A stretch of DNA of 64,000 nucleotides. It comes from Monocercomonoides exilis PA203. Taxonomy: Eukaryota; Protista; Preaxostyla. Positions 15,801 to 53,190 of this stretch are shown piece after piece. A model generated the notes under the pieces. That model was not told the origin of the DNA. It made no database searches and was given only the letters and a program-made list of their open reading frames with translations. Location: the NCBI GenBank assembly GCA_001643675.2, contig LSRY02000013.1:868001-932000 (forward strand). Direction: 5' to 3'. Made by a program: the position numbers and the translations under genes. Each line of letters begins with the position of its first letter. Within the stretch, counting starts at the first letter, position 1.

Positions 15801-18800
15801 CAAACCTCATTGATGCAAATCTCAGTGAAGTCACATTCGCCTCTCCCTTTTCCACAATCAGCAAGCTGTATCCAACATAACTCACTCCAACTCCAACTCC
15901 AAATGTGACAACACATTCATTCAAGTTCAGTGCTTCTCCTTTCAACTGGAATATCGCCTCGTGATGCTCAAGAATAGATGGCATCACCAGCTCGATCTTC
16001 CTCATCCTTGTTTCCTTCAGTACCACAAACACTCCAATGCATCCTTCCTCATCATCTTTGAATCTTGCCTCACCTTTAACAACAAGTGATCCATCATCCC
16101 CTGTTCCTTCTATCACCCTTACCATTTTTGAAAAGATCACTGTCGAACCAACCTCAACTCCATTTCCAACTTTGATTGTCACTTCTGTTCCATCGGCTGG
16201 TGTGCTCTCTTCCCTCTCAACAGGAAAGTTCAGTGTTCGGCACTCGAAGAATGTGTGCCCACACCGAGGATGATCAACCCCGGATGTGGAAACATACACC
16301 TCACTCCTCGGAACATCCAGAAGATAGCACACAATCGGAATCACGAGTGTTGCATTGTTCGTGTCTCCCACTCCCTCCACTTCATGCATATCTTCACTCA
16401 AATGTGAAACAAATTCATATCTCCCTTTTGGAATCAATTCCAGCTGAGGCGATGCAATAAACACATTCACCCCATGTTCTGCACGATTGTCTTCAAATCC
16501 CACATTCACAACCTCAAACACTGTTGTTGGTGATGAAAGCTCCAAATATACCCCTCCTCCTCTCCCCTTCTCCTCCCCACTTCCCTTCTCTGCCCCACAC
16601 TCTCCAATCACTGTTGTCACCTCTCCCCTTCCAATCTTGAATGTCCCGCTCTGACCAACACTCCACCCAATGCTCCCTCCATTCCCTTCCTTGCTCACAC
16701 AGTTCCTCAATGTGATGTTCTCCAGCTCCCATGAATCGCTTCTCTCACTTTCAGTGCTCAGTATCGCCCCATCTCCTCTCATCCGACTGATCCTTTGCAT
16801 CGTCACATTCCCCACCATCCCTCTCCCAGCAGCACTCTCCGACTCTTCCTCAAACAACGAGCAATCTCCCAGATCGATATCCTCAATCAAACAGTTTTCC
16901 ATCTTCAATTTCCCAAATATCATCTTGAATGGTGAGACATCAAATGAATGTGTCTGCCCATCTTCTGCCCCTGATATGACCACATTCTTCAGTGTCAGAT
17001 TCTGTGCTGCTGCTCGCATCACAAACAACGAAGAAGATGATTCTCCGCTGTTGTGGCGAATCGTCACCAAAGACAATCCCATCGATCCCGAATCCAGCGT
17101 GAACAAACACTCGTGTGAATTCAGCAATTCTGTGGAAATGATACACTCGCTCTCGCTTTCCCCTGTGAAGGAAATATCTCCTCCTCCAATGAACAGTGCC
17201 ATCGAAGAATATGTCGATGGAAGAATGTTCACTGTTCCCTTCGCTCCTTTCTCAATCATGTTGTATGCCTGTGTTATCGTGTTGCATGGATTGCTTTCCG
17301 TAAGTCCACACAATGGCCCTGTAATCCCATCAGCTTTGGTATACGTTGTTTTGATTGTTGGGAGCCATACATCGTAATCTGTCTGGCTGTTATTGAAAAA
17401 CACTCTCTTTGCTGATGTTGTTGAGAATGATGATTCAAATGGTGAACCTTTGAGAAAAAAATTTCTGATTTTCACATCGTGACCTTCTTCATTTTTAGCT
17501 TTGTTTCCACTGAAAAAGCAAAATGAAATTATTTTTGGAGATGGATCGGCTTCCATCCAACTCATTGAACTGATTAACATTCCTCCTCCACCACCTTCAA
17601 GAATGCCTGTTCCAGTTCCGTTTGCCTTGTTTCCATAAAATTCACATTCTGCGATCGTATAATGTCTCTGATGACTCTCGAGATGTAAGCCGCCTCCTTG
17701 ACTTCCTGCTTCATTGCGAATAAACTTGCATTTTTCAATTGTTTCATTCATGCTTCCTGAAGATTGAAGAATGCGCAATCCTCCTGCGTAATGCGAAGCA
17801 GCTTTACACTCACAAAAGACACATTCAAAAAAATAATAATCGCCATTTAATTGAAAAATTATCATTCCACCTGTATTAGCCATTGCAATGCAATTTGTGA
17901 AATTGCAATTCTTCATTTCGACACCTGCACCTGATTGAACATCAACAGCTCCGTCACCTTCATGGGTCATATTCTTGAATGAACATCTGACACATTCGAG
18001 TGTTGAATTTCCATTTAAATAAATCGCACTTCCAACTCTAACATAACTTGTTTTGAACCATTCACAATCTGTAAAAATGTGTGTTTCATTTGGCCCAAGT
18101 GGTTGTCTTGTCATGTTGCGTCCACCTGATTCGTTCACATTCATCGTTCGAAAGCAACATTTGAATGAGGAATTTGTGGCTCTCAGCGAGGCACAGGGGC
18201 TGTTCACTGACCTCACAATGCCTCCATCAATAGCATCCCAAACGCTGCAAAACGAGCAGCTCTCAATCGTTGTTTCTGTTCTCGCTCTCAAATCCATTTC
18301 TCTTTGTGCTCCTGAAGCAACAGAAATGTTTGCCATTGCAAGCCCACTGGCCTTCACAAAGCAGCTCGCATTCGGTGCAAGAAACGGTGCAGATGCTAAT
18401 TCAAATGATGAAAATGACGAATCACGAAGAGAAATAGAGCATGTTCCATCGATCTCAGAATTTTTCAAAGACGAGCAAAAAAGTCGCGGAATTTGTGCAA
18501 ACGGCTTCGAAGTCCCAATCGTCAGATTCACTGAACGGATGCTTCCTCCATCCACCACAAATGGATTCACTTGTGATGAAACTGAAATCACACATCCTTT
18601 TATATCAAGCCTTGACCCCTCGCAAACCAAGAAACAAGCTTTTCCTTCTGGCTGAATCTGCAACACACTCGCTGTTCTCACTGAGCAGTTCACAGCAACA
18701 AATGTTGATGCAATTACGCTGCACTGATTGTTTCCCTGCGTATAATAGTCATCCCTTTCTCTTGGCAACTTGAACACATCTTTTGCATCCAATCCATTTA

Positions 18801-18873: not shown

Positions 18874-20198
18874 AATTCTTCTGCTGTGCAACTTGCTCTT
18901 CGCCAAACAAAAGCACAAATGAAAAAGTCAAATGATCAATATAGCCCATATTCCTCTGCATTTATTCATCAAAAATAATATTTTGGTTTCATTTCTCAAA
19001 TAATCGCATATAACCCCATGTGCAAAAGCATAAATTATCAATCATTTCAAATATAATTTTAAGCTCAAAAAAAATTCAAAAAAAATATAGAAAAAATAAA
19101 TTCTTTAAAATACAGTGATTTTTTGTTTGTTTCCGAAGAAATACTGTCATTTCCATCGAGCATCAACAACATTCCCTCAATTGCGAAATTTTCTTCTTTT
19201 TAACGTGGAATGATTTTGTGAATTGACATTTTCCATTTTTAGTAAATCTTCTTCCAACAAATGCTCTCTCGATCCTTGCTCTCTTGTTTAATTCCATCCA
19301 AGTCCATGTACCAATAGATCTGATGTCTGTCAAGCCCTGCGTTCTTTCTGATCCTCCCTTTCGCTGTGCTTGCATCAGCAATCCACAAATAATCCATTCG
19401 CTGCAGTTCATCCCTCTGCCCATCAGAAAAAAAATAGCAGAGAAATAACTTTTAGCAAATATGATTTTATGAATATTTCGCACCATCTCAGTTGCTGAAA
19501 GTCGCTGGGAACAGAGGAATCGACATATTAATGGAAAAGCAATTCTTCAGATTGCTCTGCTTTAACGGGTTGAAACGGCATTTCTGTCATCCTCCAGATA
19601 GAACTTGCAGAACGGATGTATATGGCGAAGGCATTAGTTATATCTTGTTTCCAAAATCTGTTGGAGTCCAAAAAATCGAAAAGTGCTCCAACAAAGCAGT
19701 CAGATCTTTAAACTTTCAGCAACCTGCAAATTGCGTAGCATTATTGTTCTTCTATCATTTGACTCTATTTTCTTTGTTGTCTTCCTGTTCTCTGTTGTTT
19801 AATTCGCGAAATGAAAAGATCATGACCCATCCTTGCGTTTTTTGAAGATAAATGATTCATTTTGGATTCTAACTTTGATGGAGATGGATTTATATAAAAT
19901 TAGAGAAAAAAAGATTTTGCATATTTTCCACATTTTTATTTTTTTCTTGAATTTGTAAAATGAAAGTCAATTGTTTTAAAAAAGGAAGAAGATGACTCTT
20001 TATTTTATCTGTACACTTTTGTTTTGTGATAAAATAAGATTATCACTGAAGCATTCCTCAAATTGAACCTCACATTTATGGAAGGATTCTTTGAAAAATA
20101 TTATTTTTGGTTGTTGTTTCTCCAACTTTTTTTCACAGCAAGCCACAAAAGAGACTGAGTTTTTAAAATTAACTCATGATTTTATCGAAAAATTCAAA
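10085..20198. repeat. Left arm of ~10-kb inverted segmental duplication (partner ~32045..42175)
   Basis: Coding sequence plus ~1.3 kb upstream match the reverse complement of 32045..42175, e.g. cacaaaagagactgagt...tcatgattttatcgaaaaattcaaa at the inner end. Boundaries are approximate. Confidence 0.9.
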
Positions 20199-32044: not shown

Positions 32045-35000
32045 TTTGAATTTTTCGATAAAAATCATGATTTTTTTAAAAAAACTCAGTCTCTTTTGTG
32101 GCTTGCTGAGAAAAAAGTTGGAGCAACAATAACCAAAAATAATATTTATTTCAGAATCCTTTCCATAAATGTGAGGTTCAATTTAAGGAATTCTTCACTG
32201 ACAATCCTTGGATTATCACCAAATGAAAGGAAGCAGATGAAATAAAGAGTTATCTTCTACGTTTTTAAAAACAATTGACTTTCATTTAACAAATTCAAGG
32301 AAAAAAAAAAATAAAAATGTGGAAAATATGCAAAATCTTTTTTTCTCTAATTTTATATAAATCCATCTCCATCAAAGTTAGAATCCAAAATGAATCATTT
32401 GTCTTCAAAAAACGCAAGGATGGGTCATGATCTTTTCATTTCGCGAATAAAACAACAGAGAACAGGAAGACAACAAAGAAAATAGTCTCAAATGATAGAA
32501 GAATAATGATACTACACAATTTGCAGGTTGCTGAAAGTTTGAAGATCTGACTGCTTTGTTGGAGCACTTTTCGATTTTTTGGACTCCAACAGATTTTGGA
32601 AACAAGATATAACTAATACCTTCGCCATATACATCCGTTCTGCTAGTTATATCTGGAGGATGATGGAAATGCCGTTTCAACCCGTTGAAGCAGAGCAGTC
32701 TGAAGAATTGCTTTTCCATTAACATGTCGATTCCTTCGTTCCCAGCGACTTTCAGCAACTGAGATGGTGCGAGACATTCATGAAATCATATTTGCTAAAA
32801 GTTATTTCTCTGCTATTTTTTTTTTCTGATGGGCAGAGGGATGAACAGCAGCGAATGAATTATTTGTGGATTGCTGATGCAAGCACAGCGAAAGGGAGGA
32901 TCAGAAAGAACACAGGGCTTGACAGACATCAGATCTATTGGTACATGGACTTGGATGGAATTAAACAAGAGAGCAAGGATCGAGAGAGCATTTGTTGGAA
33001 GAGGATTTGCTAAAAATGGAAAATATCAATTCACAAAATCATTCCACGGTAAAAAGAAGAACATTTCGCAATTGAGGGAATATTGTTGATGTTCGATGGA
33101 AATGATAGTATTTCTTCGGAAACAAACAAAAAATCACTGTATTTTAAAGAATTTATTTTTTCTATATTTTTTTTGAATTTTTTTTGAGCTTAAAATTATA
33201 TTTGAAATGATTGATGATTATTTTGTTGATTATGGAATTATTAGCGATTATTTGAGAAATGAAACCAAAATATTATTTTTGATGAAGAAATGCAGAGGAA
33301 TATGGGCTATATTGATCATTTGAGTTTTTCATTTGTGTTTTTGTTTGGCGAAGAGCAAGTTGCGCAGCAGAAGAATTATGAATCTTGCGCCTATTATTTT
33401 TGTGTGCGTCAGTGCTATTTGCGAGACAGAAGAAGCAACAGGAAACGAATTAAATGGATTGGACGTAAATTTTATGTTCCGATTGCCAAGAGAAAGAAAT
33501 GACTATTATACGCAGGGAAACAATCAGTACAGCATAATTGCATCAACATTTATTGTTGTGAACTGCTCATTGAGAACAGCGAATGTGTTGCAAATTCAGC
33601 CAGAAGGAAAAGCTTGTTTTTTGGTTTGCGAGGGGTCAAGGCTTGATGTGAGAGGATGTGTGATTTCAGTTTCATCACAAGTGAGCCCATTTGTGGTGGA
33701 TGGAGGAAGCATCCATTCAGTGAACCTGACGATTCGAACTTCGAAGCCGTTTGCACCAATTCCGCGACTTTTTTGCTCGTCTTTCAAAAATTCTGAGAGA
33801 GATGGAGCAAATTCGATAACTCTTCAAGACTCTTCATTTTCATCATTTGAATTGGATTCTGCTCCATTTCTTGCACCGAATGCGAGCTGCTTTGTGAGAG
33901 CCAGTGGGCTTGCCATGGCAAACATTTCAGTTGCTTCAGGAGCACAAAGGGAAATGGATTTGAGAGCGAGAACAGAAACAACGATTGAGAGCTGCTCTTT
34001 TTGCAGAGTTTGGGATGCTATTGATGGAGGCATTGCGAGGTCAGTGAACAGCCCCTGTGCCTCGCTGAGAGCCACAAATTCCTCATTTGAGTGCTGCTTT
34101 CGAACGATGAATGTGAACAAATCAGGTGGACGCAACATGACAAGGCAACCACTTGAGGCAAATGATACACACATTTTTACAGATTGTGAATGGTTTGATA
34201 CGGGATTTGCAAATATTGGAAGCGCTATTTATTTGGAAGGAAAATCGACACTCGAATGTTCAATGTGCTCATTCAAGAATATGAGTCACAACAATGATGG
34301 AGCTGTTTGTGTCCGTTCAGCAACAGGAGTGACAATGATAAATTGTAATTTCACAAATTGCGTGGCAAAAGATAATACTGGTGGAATGATCATTTATCTA
34401 TTGAATGGCGATTATTATTTTTCTGAATGTATCTTTTGCGAGTGTAAAGTGACTTCGCATTACGCAGGAGGATTGCGCATTCATCAATCTTCAGGAAGCA
34501 TGAATGAAACAATTGAAAAATGCAAGTTTATTCGCAATGAAGTAGGATCATTTGGAGGAGGATTATTTATGGAAGGTCAGCCGACACATTTTTTGATCAA
34601 AGAGTGTGAATTTTATGGAAACAAGGCAAATGGAACAGGAAAAGACTCCTTTGAAGGCGGTGGAGGAGGAATGGTAATAAATTCTATGAGTTGGATGGAA
34701 GCCGATCCATCTCCAAAAATAATTTCATTTTGCTTTTTCAGTGGAAACAAGGATATTATCGAAGAAGGTCACGATGTGAAAATCAGGAATTTTTTTCTCA
34801 AAGGTTCACCATTTGAATCGTCGTTTTCAACAACGTCAGAAAAGAGAGTGTTTTACAACAAAAGCAAAACGAATTATGATGAATGGCTTCCAACAATCAA
34901 AACAACATATGCAAGCGCAGGTGGTGTTGAAGGACCTGTTTGTGGGCTTTCGGAAAGCAATCCATGCAACACGATAACACAGGCATACAACATGATTGAG

Positions 35001-38000
35001 AAAGGAGAGAAGGGGACAGTGAACATTCTTCCATCGACATATTCTTCGATGGCGCTGCTCATTGGAGGAGGAGATATTTCCTTCGCAGGGGAAAGCAAGA
35101 GCGAGTGTATCATTACCACAGAATTGCTGAATTCACACGAGTGTTTGTTCACACTGGATTCGGGATCGATGGGATTGTCTTTGGTGAAGATTCTTCACAA
35201 CAGCGGAGAATCATCTTCTTCGTTGTTTGTGATGCGAACAGGAGCACAGAAACTGACACTGAAGAATGTGGTCATATCAGGGGCAGAAGATGGGCAGACA
35301 CATTCATTTGATGCCTCGCCATTCAAGATGGTATTTGAGAGAACAAAGATGGAAAACTGTTTGATTGAGGATATCGATCTGGGAGATTGCTCTTTGTTTG
35401 AGGAAGAGTCGGAGAGTGCTGCTGGGAGAGGGATACTGGGGAATGTGACGATGCAAAGGATCAGTCGGATGAGAGGAGATGGGGCGATATTCAGCACTCA
35501 AAGCGAGAGAAGCGATTCATGGGAGCTGGAGAACACCACATTGAGGAACTGTGTGAGCAAGGAAGGGAATGGAGGGAGCATTGGGTGGAGTGTTGGTCAA
35601 AGCGGGACATTCAAGATTGGCAGGGGAGAGGTGACAACAGTGATTGGAGAGTGTGGGGCAGAGAAGGGGAGAGGAGAGGAGAAGGGGAGAGGAGGAGGGG
35701 TGTATTTGGAGCTTTCATCACCAACAACAGTGTTTGAGATTGTGAATGTGGGATTTGAAGACAATCGTGCAGAACATGGGGTGAATGTGTTTATTGCATC
35801 GCCTCAGCTGGAATTGATTCCAAAAGGGAGATATGAATTTGTTTCACATTTGAGTGAAGATATGCATGAAGTGGAGGGAGTGGGAGACACGAACAATGCA
35901 ACACTTGTGATTCCGATTGTGTGCTATCTTCTGGATGTTCCGAGGAGTGAGGTGTATGTTTCCACATCCGGGGTTGATCATCCTCGGTGTGGGCACACAT
36001 TCTTCGAGTGCCGAACACTGAACTTTCCTGTTGAGAGGGAAGAGAGCACACCAGCAGATGGAACGACAACAGCGACAATCAAAGTTGGAAATGGAGTTGA
36101 GGTTGGTTCGACAGTGATCCTTTCGAAAACATCAAGGGTGATAGAAGGGGCAGATGTTGAAGGATCGCTTGTTGTTGGAGGCGAGGCAGCATGCAAAGGT
36201 GGAGAGGAAGGATGCGTTGGAGTGTTTGTGGTGCTGAAGGAAACGATAATGAGGAACATTGGATTTGCGATGCCATCTGCTCTTGAACATCACGAGGCGA
36301 TATTCCATCTGAAAGGAGAAACACTGAACTTGAGTGAATGTGTTGTCACATTTGGAGAAGAAGTGAATTTTGTAGAATACAGCTTGATCATTGTGGAATG
36401 TGGAGAAGCGAATGTGACTTCGCTGAGATTGGCATCAATGAGGTTTGGGAAGGCTGGGATAAGAGCGAATGGGGGATTGTCGTCTGTGGCTCTGAAGAAT
36501 GTGGAGCTGAATGATATGACCTTTGGAGGAGAAAAGGGGTTTATTGTTTGTGAGAGAGGAAGCACACTCAGAGGAGAAAATGTGAGAGCCAGTGAGAGCG
36601 AAATGGGGGGAAGCAGTATGATTTGGGCAGGGAGCAGTTGCACTGTTCGGATGAGGGAGTGTTCGTGGAGTTTGTGCAACTTTGTTGATTCGGGGATAAT
36701 AAAAGGTGTTGAAGCGAAAGAGATATCTATCTGGGGATGCAATGGGAGCAATGTCCGAGTGAATGAGGGAGATGGGGGGATGATGTGTGGAGTGGTTGGG
36801 GAAGGAGGGATGGTGGATGTGTGGAACACGAGTGTTTTGGGGTGTGTGGCAGAGAAAGGGAATGGAGGAGGGATGAGGGTGGAGCTGAAAGGGGATGCAC
36901 AACTGAAGATCAGGAGCGAAGAAGAAGTGACACTGATGAAGAAATGTTCAGCAGGAGAGGAAGGGATGATGAATGGAGGAGGGTGTGGAGGAGGGCTGTG
37001 GGTGTTGATTGAGGGAGAGAGATGTGGGTTTTCAGTGAGAGGAGTGAGGTTTGAAGAGAACAGAGCAAGGAGCGGGAGGGATGTGTTTGTTGTGTGTGAT
37101 GATTTGAGGAGGGTTGTGAATGGAAGCAGTTTCTCGTTCAGCAGAGAGATAAGCGAGAGAGAGAACTCACTGATGGGGAAGGATGGGGAGAAGTTTTTGA
37201 GTGAGGTTGATCTGTTCATATTCATTGAGGGATACAGCTCGTGTGTGATTGAGGTGGGGAGCGAGAATGGAGACAATGGGATGTGGTGCGGGATGGAGAA
37301 CTGTCCGTGCAGGAGTGTGGATTATGGGGTTGGGAGGCTTGGTGGAGAGGGAGAAAAGAAAATAGTGATAAGTGGGAGCACGAGTGTTGAGAAGGTGGGA
37401 GATGTGAGTGGAGTTCGGATTGAAGGGAAAGACAGCAAGAGAATGAAGGTGGTTGTGGAGAAAGGAATTGAAGGGGAAGGGGAAAGTGTTCTTGATTCGA
37501 AGGGAGTGAGTGTGTTTGTGAATGTGGGGTTTGAATTGCCTGGTCATTTTGAACCGAGGAGAGAAGCAGTGATAAGCTCATCAAGAGGAAGTGGTGTTTT
37601 GGAGATGGAATTGTGTTCGTTTTTGATGCAGGAAGGGGAAGAAGAGGCAGTGGAATATGGGATTATCAGGAGCAGTGGACAAGCTGTGCAGATGAGGTGG
37701 ATATCGATAAATAATATCAGGATGAGAAAGTGTCTGATGGATCTTGCTGTTTTTGGAGCTGAGCGGAATGGGGCAGAGAATGAAATTGTGAGCATCAGCA
37801 ACTGCTCGTTTGGGAGCCTGTCAGTTGTTGGTGGAGATGAGTCAGCTGTGATGTGTGCCGAGGTGAGGAGAGTGATGAAGATAGAACAGAGCAACATGAG
37901 TGATATAACAAGTGGAGAGAGCATGAGGGGTGGGGCAGTGAGGGTGAACATCCATGATTCAGGGATGATTCATGTGAAAGAGGGGAGGATGGAGAGGTGT

Positions 38001-41000
38001 TTGGGAGAGAAGGTGAGTGGTGGGAAAGGAGGATGGATGCACGTGGACTGCAGTGAAAGGAAGGGAGGGATGCCATTCAAGTTTGAGGGAGTGGAGTTTT
38101 TTGGGAACGAGGCATTTGTGGGGAAGAACATGTTTATTTTGGATTCGGATCTGAATGTGACAGTGAGGAGCGAGACATTTGGGATTGATGTTGAAGGGAT
38201 GGAAGACGATCCGAATGAGTTTGTTGGAAGTGATGAGAAGCGGATCAACACAGATCTGTTGCGATTTCTTGTTGAATACAGGAGCGAGAGGATTGTGGTG
38301 TGGGAAAAGGGAGATGATGTTGTTCGATGTGGGAGTGAGGAGGATCCATGTGAGACACTGGAGATGGGGATGAGACACATTGAGAGAGAAGGGGAAAGAA
38401 AAGTGGTGGTTGTGAAGGAAAAGATAAGGGTGGAAGGGGAACATGATTTGAGTGGGATTGAAGTGGAATCAGTGGGAGCAGGATATGATGAGATGGAATA
38501 CGGAGCAGTTGTGATGGGGAGTGAAGGAGAAAGTGGAGCAAAAGTGTGTCTTAGCAACAGTGGAGCAGTCACTTTGAGAGCACTGGAGATGTGTGTGATG
38601 AATGTTTTGGGAAGTGGGAAAGCAGGGATGACCGTGAGTGAGGGAGAGAAAATTGAATGGGATGATTGCTCAATCTCATGGAAAGGAAAGAGAGAAGGGA
38701 TGGGAGATGTGGCATTTTGTGTTGTGAAGAAAGGGGAGCTGGAGATGAAGAGGTTCAAAGTGCTTTCGTATTTTGGGAAGGGAAGTGTGTTTATGGTGGG
38801 TGGAGATGTGGCGAGTATGATTGATGAATTGACAGTGATTGAAGCCAGATTGGAGAAGGGGAGTTTGTTTGAAATTGAAGGAGAGGGAGCAAATGGAGGA
38901 GGTGAGGTGAGGATGAAGAATTGCAGTTTTGGAACAGTTGAAGGGGGAGGAGCTGATCCTTGTGTTGTTTTGAGCAAGAGTGGGGGCGAGGGTGAGGTGA
39001 AGCTCATTGTTGAAGACTCGCTGATAGAAGGGTGCAGTTGTGGGAGAAGCACAAAGGGAGGGGCAATGCTGTTTGAGTTGAATGAAGGAGGATGGTTCCA
39101 CATTGTGAACACGAGTGTGAAGCAGTGTGGATGTTCTGTGAGCGAAGGGAAAGGAGGTGGGGTGTATCTGAAGACTGAATTGAAGGGAGAGTTGGATTAT
39201 GTGTTTGACAGGGTGATATTCCGAAGGAACGCAGCAAGGATTGGGAATGATGTGTTCATTGTGTGTGATTGCATCGAGAGACAGATCAACGAAACACAGT
39301 TCAACATCGACTTCCGGGATGAAGAGTTCATCAGGCAGAACGCGATCTATGGGATGGATGCAGGAGAGCACAAAGAGGAGGCGATGGACTTGATGAGTCT
39401 GATTGTGAAATACCAGTCAGACACGATTGTGGTGTCGAGCAAAGAAGGGAAAGGAGGGAGGAATGAGCAGCAGTGTGGGAAGCCTTTGCTGCCATGTGCG
39501 ACGATTGGGTTTGGGCTGAGGCATCTAACACACGATTTTCTCAGTCAAGTGATTGTCGATGAGGAGTCAGTGATTGATGAGGAAATTGTGTTGGACACAC
39601 TCACGCTGAGCGGGATGCATGAAGAACAGAGTCGAGTGGTTGTGAAAGGGAGGATGAACCGGAGAAAAGAAATGATTGTGGGGACAAATGGGCAGGTGTA
39701 TATGCGATGGATTCGATTTGGATTTGAAGAAGTGGAATCAACACCAACTCCGCTTCCAACGACTCATTCATCATTCATGAAGATTTGCTCGGGAAAGACA
39801 TCGATCAGCACGTGTTCGTTTGAGGGAGTGAGCTCGGCCGGGGAGGAAATGGCAGAAGTGCCATTCTGCCTGATATTTGTGGAAAGAGGGAAATGCTCAA
39901 TGGGGAATGTGAGTGTTATGTGGCTTTCATTTTTGAGTGAAGCAGTGATGGTGATGGGGGAGGATTGTGAAGTGAGTGGGCTGAGACTGAGAAATGTTGA
40001 GGGAAGCAAAGACTGTTTGAAGATGAGTGGAGGTGGGAGTGTGAAGATGGAAAAAGTTGAGGCAGGAAATGTGAGGATGGAAGACGGATGGGTCATAAGA
40101 GCAAATGGAAAGGAAGAAGGGAGACACAACAGAGAGGAAGGAGAGTTTTCATTTTCGATTTTGTCATCTTCATTTGAGAACATCACGAGTGTGGATGAGA
40201 GTGCAGGAGCAATTGATGTTGAGGGGGGAAAAGGAAATGCAGAGTTTTCGAACTGCTCTTTTTGTGGGTGTTCATCAAGAAGAGAGAAGGGGAAGATGAT
40301 ATCACTTTTATTGTGCAAGAATATTCAGATGGGGCAGTGTTTGTTTGATGGGAAGGCAAAAGAAAAGGAATTGAACGAGGAAGTGGTTGATGTGTGCAAA
40401 TGGAATGGGTCAGTTGTTGAGGTGAAGGAGAGCGCGGGGGAGATGTGGGATACGAGTTTTGTGAACTGCTGGGATGGAGGACTTTCTGTTTGTGGAGGGA
40501 GTGTGGAGATTGAGAAAGGAGAGTTCATGAACAACAACCCATCGATTGAGAGATATCCATCAGCCAGACGGAACATTGTCTGCTCTGATTCGGGGGTGTT
40601 GAATGTGATGAGTGTGAAAGGAGGAGATGGATTGAAGGATAATTCATCAATGTGGATTGTGGATTGTGGATGCGAACTGGGAGGGATAATTGAGGAGAGA
40701 GCATCATCGCTGTTCATTCCAGTGGTGGAAGAGGCGAGGAATGAGACAACGTCTGATGGGAGGACAAGCATCATGGTGGCAGGGCGACTTCTTGTTCCGT
40801 GCAATGTTTCGCTGCGGATGAGCTTCAGGAATGGGAGGGAAGAGGTGGTTGAGAGCTATGAGATTCGCGAAAATGAGAGTGTGTCGGAGAATGAAATTGA
40901 TGCAGTTATTTCATCTGCTCAGATGGCAGCAGTGGGAGCAGAGACTGAAGTGTCTGTCTGCCTTTTGTTTGGCAAAACAGAATCTCCATCATCGACTGAG

Positions 41001-42175
41001 GCATTCATTTTGAAGAACAGAAGCGAAAAAATAGAGAATGGAGACGAAAGGATTGCTGAAAGAGGAAAAGAAGGAAAATCATTTTGGCCGATCATTGTGA
41101 TTGTGCTTGTTGTAATTTTGTTGATTGTTCTGATTGTGTCAATTGTTCTGGCTGTTCGATGGAGAAAGCAAAAGAGGAGAACGGAAGAATTGGAGATAAT
41201 TGTGGAAGATACAGTGAAGAAGGACCCGAAGGCGTTTGAGATGGTGACGATGGAGATGTCTCCAGAAGAGCAGTGGAGGAGAGCAGAGAGGGAGGCAGAA
41301 AAGAAGAATGAAGAGAAAATGAAGAAGAGGGCGTATGATACGAATATGGTGCATTCGGAGTCTGAAGAGTATTTGTTATCTGAAAGTGGATCGACTGAAT
41401 ATATTTTGGGAAAAGACTCAGACAAAATTCCAGAATGGGCATTAGAGAAGGCTGAGGAAGAAGATGGCATATCGAAAAAGAGATCTCCTTCTCCATCCAT
41501 TTCATCCACTTCATCCACAGAAACTTCAGACACAGAGTCCACTTTTGTTCGATCGGAGAGTCTGTGCCCGACCACCTCGTCGATGTCAAATCTGGTGGAT
41601 GCAATCGCATGCTCATCACCTCATGAGAAGCTGATTGTGGATCTGAGGGATTCAATGTTCATGTTGTTGCATGGAAAGAACAAGACAAAGGAAATGCCGA
41701 TTGGTACTCTTCAAGAAAGGGAAGTCTCGGCTGCCCAAATCCTGTTCTGGGTAGCTAATCTCGCACTCCACTCCTTTGATGAAATGGAAAACAAGCTTCA
41801 GTCACTTTCCAATCTGAGCCCTCACATTGTGCTGTTCTCAGAACATATGGTCATCTGCATTGTCATGCATTCTGATTTATTGTCAGATGACTCTGATTCA
41901 GACTCATCGTCCATCTCTTCATTAACTGTTTTCACGTCTGCAAGTGATGATGATGATGATGAAAGTGACTCCCTTCCCTCATCCGCCTTTGAGGATGAAG
42001 ATAGCTTCAAAAAAGAGTGTTTGAGGTGGAAGGCGCCAGAGCTGCTGATCAACAAGAATATGGGGGCAACAAAGAAGTCGGTGGTGTTCTCGATCGGGAT
42101 GATGCTGTGGGAGTGCCTGACACTCCAGATCCCGTTCGGGGAGTACGAGGCTGTGATTGCTGGAGACAAGATTGA
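32045..42175. repeat. Right arm of ~10-kb inverted segmental duplication
   Basis: Reverse-complement partner of 10085..20198, including the upstream non-coding region. Confidence 0.9.
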
Positions 42176-42440
42176 AAAAGGAGAAAGGCCAGATATGATT
42201 AAGATCGAAGGAAGTTCAATGAAAGAGATTGTAAAATCATGCGTTCAGCACTATTCTGAAGGAAGATTGAGCTTAAAGGATCTAAAGAGAGAATTCATTG
42301 CACATTTTCCAAAAGGGATGACAATTCTAACAGTGTCAGATGCAATAGATTTTGAGCCAGGAATTAGGAATGGAACAGGAGCAAGCGAAAACAGAAGGAA
42401 TCAAACGGAAATCAGTTGTAGCAGTTTGTGGACTGCTTGA
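33378..42440 (+). CDS. Giant (~3,020 aa) receptor-like pseudokinase, close paralog of 9847..18873; intronless
   Basis: Same architecture with long identical stretches. First ATG 33378 (MNLAPIIFVCVSAIC), TM at ~41085-41157, LRWKAPELL kinase C-lobe. Confidence 0.9.
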   Translation: MNLAPIIFVCVSAICETEEATGNELNGLDVNFMFRLPRERNDYYTQGNNQYSIIASTFIVVNCSLRTANVLQIQPEGKACFLVCEGSRLDVRGCVISVSSQVSPFVVDGGSIHSVNLTIRTSKPFAPIPRLFCSSFKNSERDGANSITLQDSSFSSFELDSAPFLAPNASCFVRASGLAMANISVASGAQREMDLRARTETTIESCSFCRVWDAIDGGIARSVNSPCASLRATNSSFECCFRTMNVNKSGGRNMTRQPLEANDTHIFTDCEWFDTGFANIGSAIYLEGKSTLECSMCSFKNMSHNNDGAVCVRSATGVTMINCNFTNCVAKDNTGGMIIYLLNGDYYFSECIFCECKVTSHYAGGLRIHQSSGSMNETIEKCKFIRNEVGSFGGGLFMEGQPTHFLIKECEFYGNKANGTGKDSFEGGGGGMVINSMSWMEADPSPKIISFCFFSGNKDIIEEGHDVKIRNFFLKGSPFESSFSTTSEKRVFYNKSKTNYDEWLPTIKTTYASAGGVEGPVCGLSESNPCNTITQAYNMIEKGEKGTVNILPSTYSSMALLIGGGDISFAGESKSECIITTELLNSHECLFTLDSGSMGLSLVKILHNSGESSSSLFVMRTGAQKLTLKNVVISGAEDGQTHSFDASPFKMVFERTKMENCLIEDIDLGDCSLFEEESESAAGRGILGNVTMQRISRMRGDGAIFSTQSERSDSWELENTTLRNCVSKEGNGGSIGWSVGQSGTFKIGRGEVTTVIGECGAEKGRGEEKGRGGGVYLELSSPTTVFEIVNVGFEDNRAEHGVNVFIASPQLELIPKGRYEFVSHLSEDMHEVEGVGDTNNATLVIPIVCYLLDVPRSEVYVSTSGVDHPRCGHTFFECRTLNFPVEREESTPADGTTTATIKVGNGVEVGSTVILSKTSRVIEGADVEGSLVVGGEAACKGGEEGCVGVFVVLKETIMRNIGFAMPSALEHHEAIFHLKGETLNLSECVVTFGEEVNFVEYSLIIVECGEANVTSLRLASMRFGKAGIRANGGLSSVALKNVELNDMTFGGEKGFIVCERGSTLRGENVRASESEMGGSSMIWAGSSCTVRMRECSWSLCNFVDSGIIKGVEAKEISIWGCNGSNVRVNEGDGGMMCGVVGEGGMVDVWNTSVLGCVAEKGNGGGMRVELKGDAQLKIRSEEEVTLMKKCSAGEEGMMNGGGCGGGLWVLIEGERCGFSVRGVRFEENRARSGRDVFVVCDDLRRVVNGSSFSFSREISERENSLMGKDGEKFLSEVDLFIFIEGYSSCVIEVGSENGDNGMWCGMENCPCRSVDYGVGRLGGEGEKKIVISGSTSVEKVGDVSGVRIEGKDSKRMKVVVEKGIEGEGESVLDSKGVSVFVNVGFELPGHFEPRREAVISSSRGSGVLEMELCSFLMQEGEEEAVEYGIIRSSGQAVQMRWISINNIRMRKCLMDLAVFGAERNGAENEIVSISNCSFGSLSVVGGDESAVMCAEVRRVMKIEQSNMSDITSGESMRGGAVRVNIHDSGMIHVKEGRMERCLGEKVSGGKGGWMHVDCSERKGGMPFKFEGVEFFGNEAFVGKNMFILDSDLNVTVRSETFGIDVEGMEDDPNEFVGSDEKRINTDLLRFLVEYRSERIVVWEKGDDVVRCGSEEDPCETLEMGMRHIEREGERKVVVVKEKIRVEGEHDLSGIEVESVGAGYDEMEYGAVVMGSEGESGAKVCLSNSGAVTLRALEMCVMNVLGSGKAGMTVSEGEKIEWDDCSISWKGKREGMGDVAFCVVKKGELEMKRFKVLSYFGKGSVFMVGGDVASMIDELTVIEARLEKGSLFEIEGEGANGGGEVRMKNCSFGTVEGGGADPCVVLSKSGGEGEVKLIVEDSLIEGCSCGRSTKGGAMLFELNEGGWFHIVNTSVKQCGCSVSEGKGGGVYLKTELKGELDYVFDRVIFRRNAARIGNDVFIVCDCIERQINETQFNIDFRDEEFIRQNAIYGMDAGEHKEEAMDLMSLIVKYQSDTIVVSSKEGKGGRNEQQCGKPLLPCATIGFGLRHLTHDFLSQVIVDEESVIDEEIVLDTLTLSGMHEEQSRVVVKGRMNRRKEMIVGTNGQVYMRWIRFGFEEVESTPTPLPTTHSSFMKICSGKTSISTCSFEGVSSAGEEMAEVPFCLIFVERGKCSMGNVSVMWLSFLSEAVMVMGEDCEVSGLRLRNVEGSKDCLKMSGGGSVKMEKVEAGNVRMEDGWVIRANGKEEGRHNREEGEFSFSILSSSFENITSVDESAGAIDVEGGKGNAEFSNCSFCGCSSRREKGKMISLLLCKNIQMGQCLFDGKAKEKELNEEVVDVCKWNGSVVEVKESAGEMWDTSFVNCWDGGLSVCGGSVEIEKGEFMNNNPSIERYPSARRNIVCSDSGVLNVMSVKGGDGLKDNSSMWIVDCGCELGGIIEERASSLFIPVVEEARNETTSDGRTSIMVAGRLLVPCNVSLRMSFRNGREEVVESYEIRENESVSENEIDAVISSAQMAAVGAETEVSVCLLFGKTESPSSTEAFILKNRSEKIENGDERIAERGKEGKSFWPIIVIVLVVILLIVLIVSIVLAVRWRKQKRRTEELEIIVEDTVKKDPKAFEMVTMEMSPEEQWRRAEREAEKKNEEKMKKRAYDTNMVHSESEEYLLSESGSTEYILGKDSDKIPEWALEKAEEEDGISKKRSPSPSISSTSSTETSDTESTFVRSESLCPTTSSMSNLVDAIACSSPHEKLIVDLRDSMFMLLHGKNKTKEMPIGTLQEREVSAAQILFWVANLALHSFDEMENKLQSLSNLSPHIVLFSEHMVICIVMHSDLLSDDSDSDSSSISSLTVFTSASDDDDDESDSLPSSAFEDEDSFKKECLRWKAPELLINKNMGATKKSVVFSIGMMLWECLTLQIPFGEYEAVIAGDKIEKGERPDMIKIEGSSMKEIVKSCVQHYSEGRLSLKDLKREFIAHFPKGMTILTVSDAIDFEPGIRNGTGASENRRNQTEISCSSLWTA

Positions 42441-45850: not shown

Positions 45851-46303
45851 TATCAAAAAATTTCATGGAACAAATGAAAAATGTTATTAAAGAAATATTT
45901 CTCATACAAGATGAAAATTTCTTCAAAAATTTATCATTTTCCATCGGTGGAAAAAGCGGTCGTTGGTGGGAAAAGCGGTCATTCAAGTTGTTTGAAAAGT
46001 AGAGTCTTTTGGTTAAAAACATAAATATTAAAAAAAAAATAAGAACATTCACACCTGTGAAAGTTCAACGATATATATTTTTTATTTATCTACTGGTTAT
46101 AAGACAGAAAAGTTCACTTAACCTTCGTAATTTAAACAGCAGTTTGTTCAAACTGCTTTTATCAAAAATACTTCATCGTATTGAATAATCAGAAGAAATA
46201 ACTTGAATATAATGTGATTTATTCTGGAATAGCTGTTTGGAAACAAATTTTGATCTTTTTTAATGAAACTATATCAAAAAAGTTTTTGATCGAATGAATA
46301 ATA

Positions 46304-47995
46304 ATGGACGCTACAAAAAAAATCACTCCAAACCTTCTTCATCGTTTGATGGCTACTTCCGACTTCCGAAAATATTCATCTCCATCACAAAAGATCTTCG
46401 AAATTAAAAAGAAACATGTTGTAACGTGGAAAACTGCTGTGGGATCCAAAGCTATTTCAAACGGTTCATGGGAAAGAGGAATAGCGGAGATGAAAGCAAA
46501 TCTGGAAGTGGGGAAAATTGGACGCCCATCAATAATTACAAGTGAACAACTGGAAAGAGTTGAAAACCAAGTCATCGCACTGCTGTCCGAACAAAAAATT
46601 ATCAGAGTGAAGGACATTCAATCGATGGTTTTGCGAGTTGATCTTTTTATTTTTTTGATATCTTGGTTTTTTTGGATCCAGGAAGTTTTAAATACAAGTT
46701 GTGAAAGTGACGAAGAAAGGAAAAAAGTCAATTAGAAATATGCCTTTGATCTCATAAAAAGAAGCTCGATATTAAAGGCATGCATTTCCAGGCCTATGGA
46801 AATTGCAAAAATCCGTGCGCAATCACCAGAAACAATTCGTGAATGGTTCCAAAAGTTGTCTTCCATTATAACAACCAACAACATTGATTCGACAGACATA
46901 TGCAACTTTGATGAATCCTCTGTTCGTATTGGAGAAAGAACAGAAAAGCTTATTGTTTGCCTCAAAAACCAAACGCCGCCTTCTCCTCCTGCATATCCAA
47001 AAACCGAAAATGCGACTTTATGTGTTTGCATTTGTTCCGACGGGTATCATCTTCCACATATATCAATAAACCCACGAAAAAAGATACCACAAGAGTTTTC
47101 TTTTTTGTCATCTTTTAATATATAATGAATTGGTTCTTCATTATGTTAGATAAATTCGGAAACATTTCGATTTATCATGATTCAGAAATGGATTCCGCTG
47201 ATAGCGAATATACTGATAATGTCAAAATCAAAGAAAGCTCTGTTATTATTGGACAATCACCGTTCTCATTTTGATTCGGAGGTTATTTCGTTTGCTAATC
47301 ATAACAATATCATCATCGAAACCTTTCCTCCGAATATTACACACCTTTTACAGCCGTGTGATAATTGCGTGTTTTTAAGATTAAAACTTGTTCTTCAAAA
47401 TTCATTTGTTTAACCTACAAATTAAATGACTTCTTCTTTCCGAAAAGCTTTGGCAGATGTGTTGCCAAAAGCTTTATCTGCTGCAAGTTCTCCATCTGTA
47501 ATAAAATCTGCATTTTCAAACACTGAAGTTCATCCTGTTGCTGCTGCTCCAATGTTATCCAAAGTGTGCGGCACAGCTTTTTCGTCAAAATTATCATCTT
47601 CTTCAAATTTATCAACAACAGATCTGAAGAAAAGCGTTTTTGGAGATTTTTCTTTAAAAGAAAAACGACAATGAAAAGAAAAAAGTCCACGAATACCTTC
47701 GATTGAGGTTAAGGAAATGGAAATAACACACGAAAAAGCAATTGCAAACGAAGAAAAAGGAGTAGAAGAAGAAGCAGAGCAAAACGAAAGCGAAGGATCG
47801 GAGATAATGAAGAAAAGAAAAATAAGACATCGAAAAAAAAGAATTGATGATAATTATGTTTACGGAAATGAAATCAGTTCCATTCACGAAGAAAAGGGAA
47901 CATTAACTTTTGATCAGAAAACAAAGTTAAGAACAAGAGAAAGGAGAAAAATTGAAGATGAATGCGATTCAGTTATTGAAACCACAACAATTTGA
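46304..47995 (+). pseudogene. DDE_1 (pogo/Fot/TIGD-type, DD35D) transposase pseudogene
   Basis: GRP motif, WF..L, ICNFDESSV, LLLLDNHRSH, FPPNITHLLQPCD..F..LK; 35 residues between the 2nd and 3rd Asp. Probable 54-bp intron at 46628-46681; seven internal stops. Confidence 0.9.
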
Positions 47996-48280
47996 ATGGA
48001 TCAATTTTTATTTTGAAGTTGATGCAAATGAAGATATTTATTTTTCTGAACTGCGTTAGTCTTATTTTTCCAATTCACATTTCTTTTTTAAATGAAAACA
48101 GGCTGTTGATGATATAGTTTAAGACCTTTTTTAGAATTATTTATACATATTTCTGTTCGACAAACAATAATTATCTAAATAAAAAACGCTTCAGGCCATA
48201 TCAAAAGAACAACAGGGTGGAAAAATAACATTATTTTTGTTCCTCCAACTGCCGCTTTTCCCACCAACGACAGCTTTTTC

Positions 48281-51200
48281 GGCAAGTTCCAAGTATATGG
48301 ACCATCGATAAAAAATTCTTTTCATAAAGAATACGAAAGAAAACGTCATATTAATAAATTAAAAATTAGTTTTATTTGTCGAAAATGCAATGTTAATAAC
48401 TTTCGATTTTATCATTTGATCTATCCCATTTATATTTTCAAACTTTCCTGTTTTTATTTCGTTTTAATTGTGAAGGCTTGGAGCTTTATCACATCATAAC
48501 AAGGAATAAAATAGTTTTAAATTTTTATTGATTGCAAAAAACTTTTTGATAAATTTTCACATCATCATTTTTGACTGTTATTATTTAAAACAAATAAAAT
48601 CTTTGTGCTTTCATTCTATTGAGTAAAGTTCTTTGCCAAAATTTAGGATATGAATAACATAATTTGAAAGCTTTCTTCGACAAACTGTTATTGAATTCTA
48701 TCTGATCTGCTAACAGAATTTTTTGAACTGAATTCAATTAAATAAATTTTTGGAAGCAATCCAGAAAATTGAAGAGATCAAGTATTTGCTTCTGTGCGAT
48801 ATGAAAGAGGAATGACTTGCACTGACAATGAATTTGGAAATTGAGAGGAAACAGCAGACACAACAAATAAAGATCGCTCTTTGAAGATCACTCCAATCAA
48901 TGCTGCAGCGGAGTTTGAGAAAATCTCAATTAATGATTTAACTGATTCTTGTTTTTATAAAAATAACGAAGAATACAAAGATGAAGGAGATTCAGATGAA
49001 GTCAATGCAAAAGAAATCCAAACAAATTTCTTTTCACCAAATACTTCTGCTGATGGCTGTTTCCTTGATTCCTGCAGGCGGATGGCTGAGAACGAAACAT
49101 TGCTCAAACACAAACAATGACTCTCGACACAAATTACAGTATTTGCTAACTGCGCTGGCTCTTCTGACGTGATTATGCAGTCGCCCAGCGTCAGATTTCC
49201 AATCCTCACGCCAAAGACAGAGCGATGCGCTGAAGCGAAGCTGGGGCAGAAGACGATGTCCATTCCCAAAATGTTGCACTTCTCAAACGAAGATACAACA
49301 CAATCGGTACTTCCGTACGTCTAACCAATTTTTGAGTTGAACTCAAAAACAGCTGGGCTGCCTCTAACTGTCTGCACCTTTGCTGATGAAATGGCTGTCT
49401 CCGCTGAAACAGCTGCCTTCTTCTCCACCAGCACGTTCTGGTATGGCTCGTTGTTCAGATGCCGCACAGCCTCATTCAGCGTCTCACACTAGTCTTCTCT
49501 TCGCCCACAGTCCTTCCCGTTCTTCCCGTTCTCTCCAGACACAAAAATCTGCTCTGACTTGTAGAACACAATAAATTGCACCAAATCAATTGTCCACTCG
49601 TTTTCTTTGTCCATCCCGAAGATCGCATTATTTCTGTCAAATACCAACTCACTGAAGTCCATCACAAACAGCGCCTCGTTGATCTGCTCAGCAATCGATC
49701 GGCAGACAATGAAAAGATCCTTCGCCACACTCGCTCTGTTCAAAGAAAACCGAATCAGCCGAAATTTGATTGGCAGCGCCTTCGCTTTCTCCGAAAACTG
49801 TGCATCTGAATCTTCTGGATCGTCCGGGCAGTTCAATGCAATTGCACCTCCTCTGCCTTCACTCGTTGAGCACGCACATGTCACAAAAGACGACAGATTC
49901 GCCAGCACACTGCCTTCATTTGCCCAGCTGTCAGCCAGCCCGCCCGCCTTCTCCTTCATCCACACACAAAACGCCCCTCCCAGCTGAGACTCGCTGTTGC
50001 AGTCGCTGAATGTCGAGTTGTCCTTCGTCAGCTCCACAGTCAGCTCGCTCTCATAAGAAATGATCGATGCATTCGCATTTGTGCTGCGGATGAGATGCCA
50101 CTGAAGATTCTCCAGTTTGATTTCGCTTGCTATCATTTCTTTGCCATTCTTTGATAAGACTGATTCCTCATCCCCCTTCTCTTCCGCATCTCCCACAGAA
50201 ATAAACGATCCATCTGCATAATTCAGAACATCAATAGAAGACGCACTTGCCACAAAATGTGCAGCAGGTGCTGTAAGTCGGATGGCCGATGCCGCAAAGG
50301 AAAGCTCGTCCATTTTCATTTCTGCGATCGGAAGTGTCCCAGACGAAACATGAAAAAGCACAAAAGCAACATTTTCTTCTGCTGTCTGTATCGCAAAGGA
50401 GCATTTACAAAGCGTGGCTGTTCCTGTCTCAGTGAAAAGAAGTTCTTTTTGCTATGTTTCGAAAGACGAAGGCAGGCAGAAGTTGATTGAGGTGAAAGTG
50501 AGCATAAGCTTGTTTGTAAGCACAGCCTCAGAAGGCTCAGAAAGAGATTGAATAGCTTTTCCCACATTGATTGTGCATTCATCTGACGAAGGCTCATCAG
50601 AAGAGGAAGAAGAAGAATAACCTGGTGAAGAAGGAACAGCTGGGCTTATTGAGCTGTTTGAAAGGTCCCACTCGTCTGAAATAGTAGCACTTGTGTTGAT
50701 TTTGATTTCTCTGAACTGAATTCCTTCTCTGAAATGCCTCATCCCTTCCCAAAACGACAGACAAGGCTCCGTTTCTTATCCACACCAGCGAATGTCTCTT
50801 CCACTCAACAACACGACAACAGAATTGTTTGTGTGATCAAACAGCAGCTTGTCCAATGAAATGTCTTCTGCAAAGTTCACTCCATCTAACCCAAAGAAAA
50901 CTGTTGTATTCTTCCATTCAGTCCAATCAAACATCAACCTTTCTATGAAAACTGAAGAATTCAAATCGGAGCTCAATATGAACGCGTTTCTGCCAACAAA
51001 TGCTTCATTCTCAGAAAACACCAAATCAGGTGAAGAAAAACCATCGATCAAATAATAACATCTCAGATTCAAAATCCATCCTCTTTCTTTGAAAGTCGAA
51101 CTGACATAAACAACTCAAAAATAACTCACTTCCTCATTTCATTCGCCACAATAATCATGTCTCTTCCCTGTTGTGCCCTGTTTCCTCCAACGCTTATATC

Positions 51201-51980
51201 TTAAATGAATATGTGTCATTGTTGTCTGTTGCACATGTCATATAGATTCCTCCCCCACATCCTTCAGAACTACTGCAGATCCTATCCGTCACTCCCACAT
51301 TCCTCATCTTCAGATGTCATTCTGCCACCTTCAGCTCAAAAGACATCGCTCCTCCCTTTTTGAATCCTTCAGATCCGAGTGTCTGGAACGAGCATCCAAC
51401 AACTTCGATTTCGAAGCTGTTCAAAAGATTAAATATTAAAGAACACGGATTTGAAACTCCGTTGTTGACTCTGCTGAATGAAGAAGATTACAATAGAAGA
51501 ACAAATGTTGAAAAATCCTCTTTATCTTTGTATTTTCAGTTTTTAAGTTTTTCCTTTATAAAAATTAATGCAAATAAATATTTTTATTTATGAATGTTAT
51601 TTTGCTTAAGATTCTGATTGTTCAATAGAGTGTGAATCAATATCATCGATGAAATAAACGAAAAAAGTGAATTGGGCTCATTTGTCAGAAAAAACATTGA
51701 AAAGAGCAAACATATAACGTTTTTGTATTTCTTAAAAATGAACACAACAAAAACTCGAATGAAAAAATGTGTAACGCGTTCAATTGAGAAAAAATGACAG
51801 AATAAAAAACTATAATTGTTTGAAAATATAAATGGGATAGATCAAATGATAAAATCGAAAGTTATTAACATTGCATTTTCGACAAATAAAACTAATTTTT
51901 AATTTATTAATATGACGTTTTCTTTCGTATTCTTTATGAAAAGAATTTTTTATCGATGGTCCATATACTTGGAACTTGCC
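48281..51980. mobile_element. 3,700-bp non-autonomous long-TIR element (Pack-MULE-like) with captured gene fragment
   Basis: Perfect 163-bp TIRs (48281-48443 / 51818-51980, GGCAAGTTCC...). Direct repeat GCTTTTTC at 48273-48280 and 51981-51988. No transposase recognised inside. Confidence 0.9.
49030..51470 (-). pseudogene. Frameshifted internal fragment of the giant beta-helix receptor family (TE cargo)
   Basis: FSENEAFVGRNAFILSSDLN vs FAENEAFVGKNMFILDSDLN; CSTSEGRGGAI...FSLNRASVAKDLFIVC..I..QINE..F..DF vs CSVSEGKGGGV...FRRNTASIGNDVFIVC..I..QINETQFNIDF. CG...C motifs broken by stops; no signal peptide, TM or kinase. Confidence 0.85.
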
Positions 51981-52019
51981 GCTTTTTCCACCGATGGTAT
52001 TCATTAGTGAAAAAAGGGT

Positions 52020-52020
<1 letters not shown>

Positions 52021-52065
<45 letters not shown>
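52021..52065. repeat. A45 homopolymer
   Basis: 45 consecutive A, 23 bp after the pogo right end. Confidence 0.9.
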
Positions 52066-52246: not shown

Positions 52247-53190
52247 ATGCAAGAACAAGATAAGCTCCTTTCATTTTTCCACACAATAGAAAAGCTTAAA
52301 GTTTAAAAATTGCCATTGGTTTCATAAATAATATCTGCTTTAGAAATTACCTCGTACTGGATGGATGACGAGGGTCAATAATCCAGAAACAGTTTCAAGT
52401 CACATTTTCAGAACAGCTCTTTTAGGATTTGTTATTCGAGAAAAAGATATTGATTACGGCAAGTTGGCAAATGTATTTTATAATTGTTTTCAGTATTCTT
52501 TTAATAAAAACAAAGATGCATCAAAATGGGCCTCATACATGATCTTGCTGAATCTGTAATAGGCGATCTTACTCCTGACCAAGCTTTGAAAGTTGACAAG
52601 CATCAACTGGAAGCGGTTTTTTTCATGATTTTTGATTTATTTAAAGAATCCATCATTTCAGGATGGTGTCAAAAAATTATGCGAGGATCTGCCTGTAGAT
52701 GTTGGTTTGCTTTTTATTGAATAAGGGTTGATATTGTGAATGCTTTTTCAGCTGATGAATTTACCACTCTTTGGAATGAATTCGAGGTACAAGAGACATT
52801 TTGATCCTTTTTTATTTTTGCAATGAAAGGAATAAATTAAATTTATAAACAAAATTCAGGATGGTAATACGAAAGAGGCAAAGCTTGTAAGAGAATTCGA
52901 TAAGCTGGAAATGATCATGCAAGCACGCGAATACGAAATAGGTTTGCAAATCCTTTTGTTACAAGAAAAACCTCTTGCACATTGACGCAAACAATCCTTT
53001 TGCTTTGATAGATCAACCTGGCGTGAATTTAGAGACCTTTTTTGCGTCCACAGCAGATATGTTTACATTTCCGTGCACAAAGGCCTTGGATGAACGCATA
53101 AGAGCAACTAGAAGTGAACACATTAATGATCATCTTTTGCAAACAGATCAGAAAGAATCTGGATGCAAGATAGAACAGAAGACCGAATGA
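52247..53190 (+). CDS. HDDC2: HD-domain 5'-deoxynucleotidase (HDDC2/YGK1 family); 6 introns
   Basis: Spliced KLK|KLPRTGW...PETVSSHIFR...KCIKMGLIHDLAESVIGDLTP...LWNEFE|DGNTKEAKLVREFDKLEMIMQAREYE. Confidence 0.92.

Follow-up and report, generated by a model that had tools for sequence, protein, structure and literature searches.

Gene capture is well documented for the Mutator, CACTA, hAT and Tc/mariner elements of plants and animals, and no literature report of gene capture by a Merlin element was found. Plant Pack-MULEs and animal Pack-TIRs carry a host fragment between terminal inverted repeats (TIRs), are bounded by a target-site duplication (TSD), have a parental copy of the cargo elsewhere and become multi-copy by transposition; those surveyed in animals belong mostly to hAT and Tc/mariner, and the main text of the survey makes no mention of Merlin (PMC8277862). 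Merlin itself (Feschotte 2004) is recognized by GG termini, 8-9-bp TSDs and an IS1595-type transposase domain, with TIRs of 24-462 bp beginning 5'-GG (PMC8101967). More than 100 Merlin copies have been reported in Monocercomonoides exilis (families F1-F7, Monocercomonoides sp. PA203), with 8-bp TSDs and mostly 23-29-bp TIRs; transposase-bearing copies alone were described, and the paper makes no mention of non-autonomous or cargo-bearing Merlins in this species (PMC8101967). The subject here is a 3.7-kb unit in a 64-kb stretch of the M. exilis PA203 genome (contig LSRY02000013.1, positions 868,001 to 932,000 of the forward strand; hereafter the window, numbered from its first letter), which an initial annotation made from the letters alone had described as a Pack-MULE-like element carrying a piece of a giant surface-receptor gene. 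With a probability of about 0.86, the unit is a non-autonomous, internally deleted element of the Merlin superfamily that carries a captured receptor fragment and later recombined.

With the described Merlins this element has in common the host species, the 5'-GG, the 8-bp TSD and, in its full-length relatives, an IS1595-type transposase. It differs from the published M. exilis copies in its long TIRs (163-190 bp across the family) and in belonging to a subfamily that lacks transposase and carries a 3.7-kb fragment of a host gene. From Pack-MULEs and Pack-TIRs it is set apart by its superfamily, its protist host, a cargo that appears to be in exchange with the parent gene family, and the unusual length of that cargo, a single fragment of the genome's largest gene family; these points, together with the copy number, are what is new.

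Terminal repeats, target site and transposase-encoding relatives

The unit, with its perfect TIRs and 8-bp TSD, is confirmed as an observation (Table 1). An inverted-repeat search returned arms of 164 nt with 100% complementarity (48280-48443 and 51818-51981), which would leave room for the 6-bp TSD and longer TIR that the initial annotation had kept as an option. When 18 other paired copies are compared with the window copy, the true termini come to lie at GGCAAG...CTTGCC. Immediately outside GG...CC the bases of other copies are non-complementary, as in the TSDs AATTTTTG and GAAACTTG, and the TSD is therefore 8 bp, a choice backed by the flanks of L033 and L035; a 6-bp TSD with a 164-bp TIR is ruled out by these flanks. 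Within the correct limits the arms are complementary at 163 of 163 positions and GCTTTTTC is found on both sides, just as first described.

The element lies 9 bp within the right TIR of a decayed pogo-like DNA transposon, whose TIRs occupy 45941-45978 and, interrupted, 48252-48280 plus 51989-51997. When the element and one GCTTTTTC are removed, the two interrupted parts join into the complement of 45941-45978 at 37 of 38 positions, so that the left TIR of the pogo-like transposon represents the uninterrupted target and a clean transposition event at this site is indicated; the reconstituted target alone cannot tell a 6-bp from an 8-bp TSD. This left TIR served as the empty-site reference in place of a paralogous empty site. 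None was recovered, because just 9 bp past the insertion belong to the pogo-like element: its left flank has seven paralogues, and searches with the right flank and with a 21-nt pattern gave no adjacent match. A joint 48271->51984 seen in a DNA run was considered as an excision footprint and rejected, since it resembles a copy of the pogo-like TIR without an insertion. Contigs built from short reads of the source sample show no difference from the interior or from the region of the left junction, and they end in the repeat; the contig over 48187-48306, likewise without a difference, has just 26 nt within the repeat.

The genome search covered 82,301,135 bases in 101 contigs, in agreement with the published Nanopore assembly of M. 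exilis PA203 (101 contigs, ~82.3 Mb; PMC8767320). It yielded 40 scored matches to the 163-bp TIR and, for the terminal 16-mer with at most one mismatch, 104 occurrences against one for the reversed control. Nearly all copies start with GGCAAGTTCC, and about 30 loci carry cargo. Perfect 8-bp TSDs, AT-rich and all mutually different, flank nine of the 19 paired copies (the window copy, L032, L033, L035, L037, L042, L044, L046 and L047). The multi-copy repeat with further TSD-flanked insertions on which the initial annotation had staked its reading is thus present, and so is a transposase-encoding copy with the same repeat, which it had proposed to look for and which is of Merlin type.

Specifically, two copies with the same termini, L047 (C2:349296-355161, 5,866 bp) and L048 (C39:287511-293277), encode an ISXO2/IS1595-like DDE transposase. 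L047 has 190-bp TIRs identical at 99.5%, the TSD AAACATTT and an uninterrupted transposase frame of 365 codons; its match to PF12762 DDE_Tnp_IS1595 (L047:5241-6335(-), E 1.4e-16, 61.3 bits with a cut-off of 27) spans profile positions 25-151 of 153, and L048 matches at E 8e-16. VDE-, SDEW- and NAIE-type motifs are visible in the L047 translation and are candidates for the conserved D, D, E catalytic residues. About ten further copies of this transposase lineage exist, mostly broken, among at least 900 IS1595-like candidate matches in the genome. The window copy has the TIR alone in common with L047 and L048 (~80% identity over ~158 nt, and no difference in the first 20 nt), and neither of the two contains a receptor-like fragment at E < 1e-4. 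A tblastn search with the L047 transposase found no match anywhere in the 64-kb window, and the unit is accordingly a non-autonomous Merlin element and not a MULE.

Four further loci belong in this context. L043 (G000:C25:676934-680762) is a 3.8-kb copy with 253-bp TIRs of the L047 type, 100% identical between arms, and no TSD; its interior holds no receptor fragment, no long open reading frame (ORF) and no transposase beyond the TIR-encoded stretch, so it appears to be a different non-autonomous derivative. L049 and L050 (G000:C1:230582-240581 and 258196-268195) are ~12-kb copies of the transposase lineage with the terminus variant GGCAAGTTAC, lying ~15 kb apart in opposite orientation, with ORFs of 850-1,000 codons resembling an inserted retroelement. 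At L031:4852-5824 (G000:C25:1882903-1883875) a 5'-truncated Merlin transposase gene adjoins the right end of L031, the copy closest to that of the window, which has no TSD there. It covers codons 101-365, at 96.6% to L047 and with no stops, and a further TIR terminus follows at C25:1888468-1888483; the locus may combine a cargo element with an autonomous one.

The receptor-derived cargo and its parent genes

The receptor-derived part of the window copy amounts to ~2.66 kb, somewhat more than the ~2.4 kb first given, and comprises 692 codons in one frame with four stops (50776, 50452, 49489, 49321) and no frameshift, followed by two short frameshifted pieces. Its homology to the window's two giant receptor genes, also claimed at the outset, holds: the 290-aa ORF at 49489-50361(-) matches them at E 3.5e-24 with 32-33% identity, and they are 24-33% identical to the cargo protein. 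The giants themselves (9847-18918(-) and 33333-42440(+); 3,023 and 3,035 codons) are 88% identical. They stand head to head, ~14 kb apart, with a partial kinase tail; in the giant at 9847-18918 the Pfam kinase match covers the C-lobe alone (profile positions 163-256 of 258). A Pfam scan of the cargo returned no family match. An AlphaFold model of 431 residues is all-beta (predicted local distance difference test, pLDDT, 81; predicted template modelling score, pTM, 0.81), and its top Foldseek matches are parallel beta-helix enzymes, weak throughout (best E 2.7e-3, none at E <= 0.001).

Much closer relatives of the cargo lie elsewhere in the genome. Eight loci outside elements match L038 from element position 531/558 to 4226/4227 at 85-93% nt, and the 730-codon open stretch of L038 matches them at 87-93% aa. 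These loci are C80:1881887-1885562, C42:27432-31122, C42:380424-384114, C53:451823-455510, C14:294084-297765, C14:351102-354768, C14:544339-548021 and C15:1100842-1104501. Six of the eight are situated within unbroken frames of 3,906-4,328 codons; the other two, C42:381416 and C53:452320, have open frames of 1,540 and 1,091 codons. The window copy is 88-90% identical to these loci in nucleotides, except to C15 (78%). Its strong divergence from the window giants, which had been interpreted as the mark of an old relic of those genes, is better accounted for by a source in another giant subfamily, 88-93% identical in nucleotides. None of the eight parent loci is among the 100 TIR termini listed out of 104. 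An exhaustive representative search and a word-based search for cargo homologues returned annotated transposon ORFs and distant giants but no parent in full length. On either side, the 0.3-0.4 kb from TIR to cargo match neither the parents nor L047. Judged by these sequence comparisons, the cargo is an internal ectodomain piece of one subfamily of giant genes. As in Pack-type elements generally, host-derived sequence stands between TIRs with a parental copy outside any transposon, and transposition continued after capture, as seen in the ~30 cargo loci, the deletion breakpoints found on six contigs and the differing TSDs. Kinase-tailed giant receptors overlap 'unclassified repeats' according to the M. 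exilis genome paper (PMC8767320).

The same ~3.7-kb receptor fragment characterizes the whole subfamily, and the window copy aligns over its full length with most other copies at 73-88%. Longer copies exist (L038 and L039, 4.8 kb; L041, 5.3 kb), in which an extra 1.0 kb sits between window-element positions 2819 and 2828; their minus strand holds a ~1,200-codon frame with two to four breaks, both frame ends lying inside repeat modules. The breakpoints of the corresponding deletion and the neighbouring substitutions are identical in the window copy, L031, L032, L033, L036 and L040, and the ~1-kb deletion therefore arose once, after which the deleted form spread to at least six contigs. In the public proteome the cargo ORFs of L038 (L038:2538-4730(-)) and L041 appear as ordinary genes (MONOS_15448, MONOS_12864, MONOS_10886 and others), all under the name 'uncharacterized protein'. 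L040 (G000:C23:117737-123206) lies at the centre of a palindrome whose flanks (377-1000 and 4471-5094) are 100% reverse-complementary over 624 bp, and it has no TSD; a foldback structure or an effect of the assembly could account for this arrangement.

Selection, sequence exchange and alternative readings

The alternative that fares best, though still unlikely, is that the transposon-borne ORF is a functional gene now, or was until recently, and is kept by selection on the element, like the Drosophila Ssk-FB4 coding Pack elements. Copies differ from one another 1.5-2 times more at third codon positions than at first and second ones, and the ratio of nonsynonymous to synonymous substitution (dN/dS) is 0.29-0.49 (Nei-Gojobori, all 28 copy pairs); such figures would suit a functional ORF, as would the mere four stops of the window copy, the annotation of the L038 open stretch as gene MONOS_15448 and the exact RNA-library contig matches described below. 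However, the ~1,200-codon frame is fully open in no copy examined, both its start and its end lie inside beta-helix modules, and it has no signal peptide, membrane span or kinase tail. The window copy has 73 substitutions of its own in 2,076 nt (3.5%), distributed evenly among codon positions (18/27/28, p = 0.29), and it is one of three copies, out of five, whose private substitutions lack codon bias; sites common to at least two copies show the third-position excess (22/25/50, p = 7e-4). Recent change thus looks neutral, and older variation was filtered by selection on the protein. The older variation in the cargo did not arise inside a single transposon clade. Import of host-gene variation fits better, given that transposon copies interleave with host genes in segment 800-1700 of the window element. 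Transitions and transversions are about equal between copies, with no sign of a mutation bias resembling repeat-induced point mutation (RIP).

That segment occurs in two versions, just 68-70% alike. The first is found in L032, L036, part of L033 and the intact C15 gene (87% to L032), and the second in the window copy, L031, L038, L039, L041 and the C14, C42, C80 and C53 loci. Two deep classes, each near a different host gene, might point to several independent captures, in which one backbone took up fragments from different receptor genes. This is quite improbable, as the cargo end points, 531/558 and 4226/4227 of L038, are common to all copies, which speaks for a single capture; as both classes contain the one identical internal deletion with its common flanking substitutions; and as copies of both classes are 80-95% alike outside the segment, so that recombination after one capture is far more economical. 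Since the one derived deletion is found together with either version, the copies are mosaic, and at least one exchange, between host gene and transposon copy or between copies, must have followed capture. The cargo thus appears to have exchanged sequence at least once with receptor genes or other copies. The idea of module shuffling through silent donor cassettes, raised in the initial annotation, gains partial support from at least one such passage, in one direction or the other, between host genes and cargo. A further discontinuity separates L038 from L037, with one difference in 880 bp and 48 in the next 590 bp. A site-shuffling test for conversion tracts gave many 'significant' runs confounded by the divergent L032/L033 segment, and is not used as evidence.

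The Pack-MULE reading, in which a MULE transposase would mobilize a non-autonomous, Mutator-like element that had captured host DNA, can hardly be right, even if long G-starting TIRs, a captured host fragment and the lack of a transposase are all in keeping with it. MULEs make TSDs of 9-11 bp, and here the TSD is 8 bp in nine of nine clean cases. Every transposase found within elements of this TIR is IS1595-like (Merlin), and the combination of GG termini with TSDs of 8-9 bp has been published as the signature of Merlin (PMC8101967). Of the original assignment, the transposase-less TIR element with its host fragment stands, and the Mutator superfamily does not. An assembly artefact or local inverted duplication in place of transposition, which the Nanopore-based assembly and the perfect 624-bp palindrome around the sister copy L040 might suggest, has practically no chance against dozens of dispersed copies with different 8-bp TSDs, a host pogo-like TIR that reconstitutes exactly, and independent short-read contigs that show no difference in the interior or in the region of the left junction.

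The preferred reading, a non-autonomous Merlin element with a captured and recombined receptor fragment, suggests the following course of events. Full-length relatives such as that at C2:349296-355161 would supply a Merlin (IS1595-like) DDE transposase from elsewhere. Acting in trans, this enzyme would bind the long GG-starting TIRs, excise the element and insert it by cut-and-paste with an 8-bp TSD, in the window into the last bases of the pogo-like transposon. A ~3.7-kb fragment (2.66 kb after the deletion) from the ectodomain of one giant receptor/kinase-tail gene subfamily would have been captured once, in a backbone of ~0.3-0.4 kb per side between TIRs and cargo, and the captured form would have spread to about 30 loci. 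Recombination of the cargo with receptor genes or other copies, through ectopic gene conversion, may have followed, and the cargo of the window copy would now be decaying as a pseudogene.

Several observations weigh against this account. Ten of the 19 paired copies are without a perfect TSD (one matches at 6/8). Among the transposase-encoding copies found, none has a TIR that matches the window copy's at more than ~80%, and the actual mobilizing partner is therefore inferred. The nearest sister copy of the window element is just 88% identical, and there is hence no sign of a (very) recent burst. A near-identical donor for the L038 conversion patch, the sole patch tested, is not in the assembly, where the best match is 93%. 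Finally, parent gene structure, capture junctions and tract-level identity were taken from BLAST tables alone.

The pseudogene archives of VSG, var and vlsE are silent donor cassettes of antigenic-variation systems. By analogy, the elements described here may be likened to these as dispersed, broken surface-protein modules that are mosaic with intact genes; unlike them, they have no expression site, there is no evidence of intact genes receiving cassette sequence, and to our knowledge no antigenic variation is known in the commensal M. exilis. That Merlin-borne fragments and intact receptor genes exchange in both directions by ectopic gene conversion, making the transposon family a mobile ectodomain archive, is a doubtful proposition; if true, variation would return from the transposons to the largest family of surface-receptor genes in M. 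exilis. As it stands, a 3.7-kb piece of the largest gene family in the genome has been carried to about 30 loci by one Merlin family, which offers a countable system for how Pack-type elements are born and how much they exchange with parent genes. It also bears on the share of transposon cargo in the unexplained repeat fraction and among annotated 'uncharacterized proteins' such as MONOS_15448 and MONOS_12864.

Age, expression and features of the locus

Perfect TIRs had been taken initially as a sign of recent mobilization. In this family the median identity between arms is 97.5% within elements and 81.5% between elements, and arm-to-arm identity is unrelated to TSD survival: L043 combines 100% identical arms with no TSD, and L033 arms of 81% with a perfect TSD. 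Either the arms are homogenized within elements or the flanks were swapped by recombination, and on either explanation arm identity is no clock in this Merlin family. A fairly recent insertion would be in keeping with the 8/8 match of the TSD and the 37/38 match of the host TIR.

Contigs from two RNA libraries match the interior of the window copy exactly at 48785-49117, 49444-49625 and 50262-50438, at a depth of 4-5, and none covers its TIRs or flanks. This is weak evidence of low-level transcription of the interior, from contigs that give no strand and could include DNA carry-over.

Table 1. Coordinates of the element and its insertion host in the window
Feature	Positions	Strand	Basis or remark
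Left TSD copy GCTTTTTC	48273..48280	.	Target present once in complementary left TIR of host pogo-like element
Left TIR, 163 bp, start GGCAAGTTCC	48281..48443	+	100% complementary to right arm
Left subterminal backbone, specific to the non-autonomous subfamily; neither receptor-derived nor in transposase-encoding copies	48444..48856	.	Host-gene matches start at window-element position 577, or 531/558 in L038
Cargo: internal piece of giant receptor-family gene, predicted beta-helix ectodomain modules	48857..51517	- (coding sense)	
Junction of ~1.0-kb internal deletion (L038 element 2786-3803); marks amplified deletion subfamily	51100..51107	.	
Right subterminal backbone; second small deletion (L038 4385-4522), also in L033	51518..51817	.	
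Right TIR, 163 bp	51818..51980	-	Arm-to-arm complementarity
Right TSD copy GCTTTTTC	51981..51988	.	
Insertion host: decayed pogo-like DNA transposon, last 9 bp at 51989-51997	45941..48280	+	7 paralogues, TIR match

The pogo-like transposon is ~2.35 kb long with 38-bp TIRs, retains DDE_1 fragments at 46796-47413 (PF03184, E 4e-11) and has at least seven paralogues elsewhere, 87-92% identical. Directly downstream of its end is a run of ~45 A (52020-52065), at which short-read contigs break. The neighbouring downstream HD-domain-like gene is covered by RNA and spliced, with one spliced RNA contig defining a 43-nt GT..AG intron at 52301-52343.

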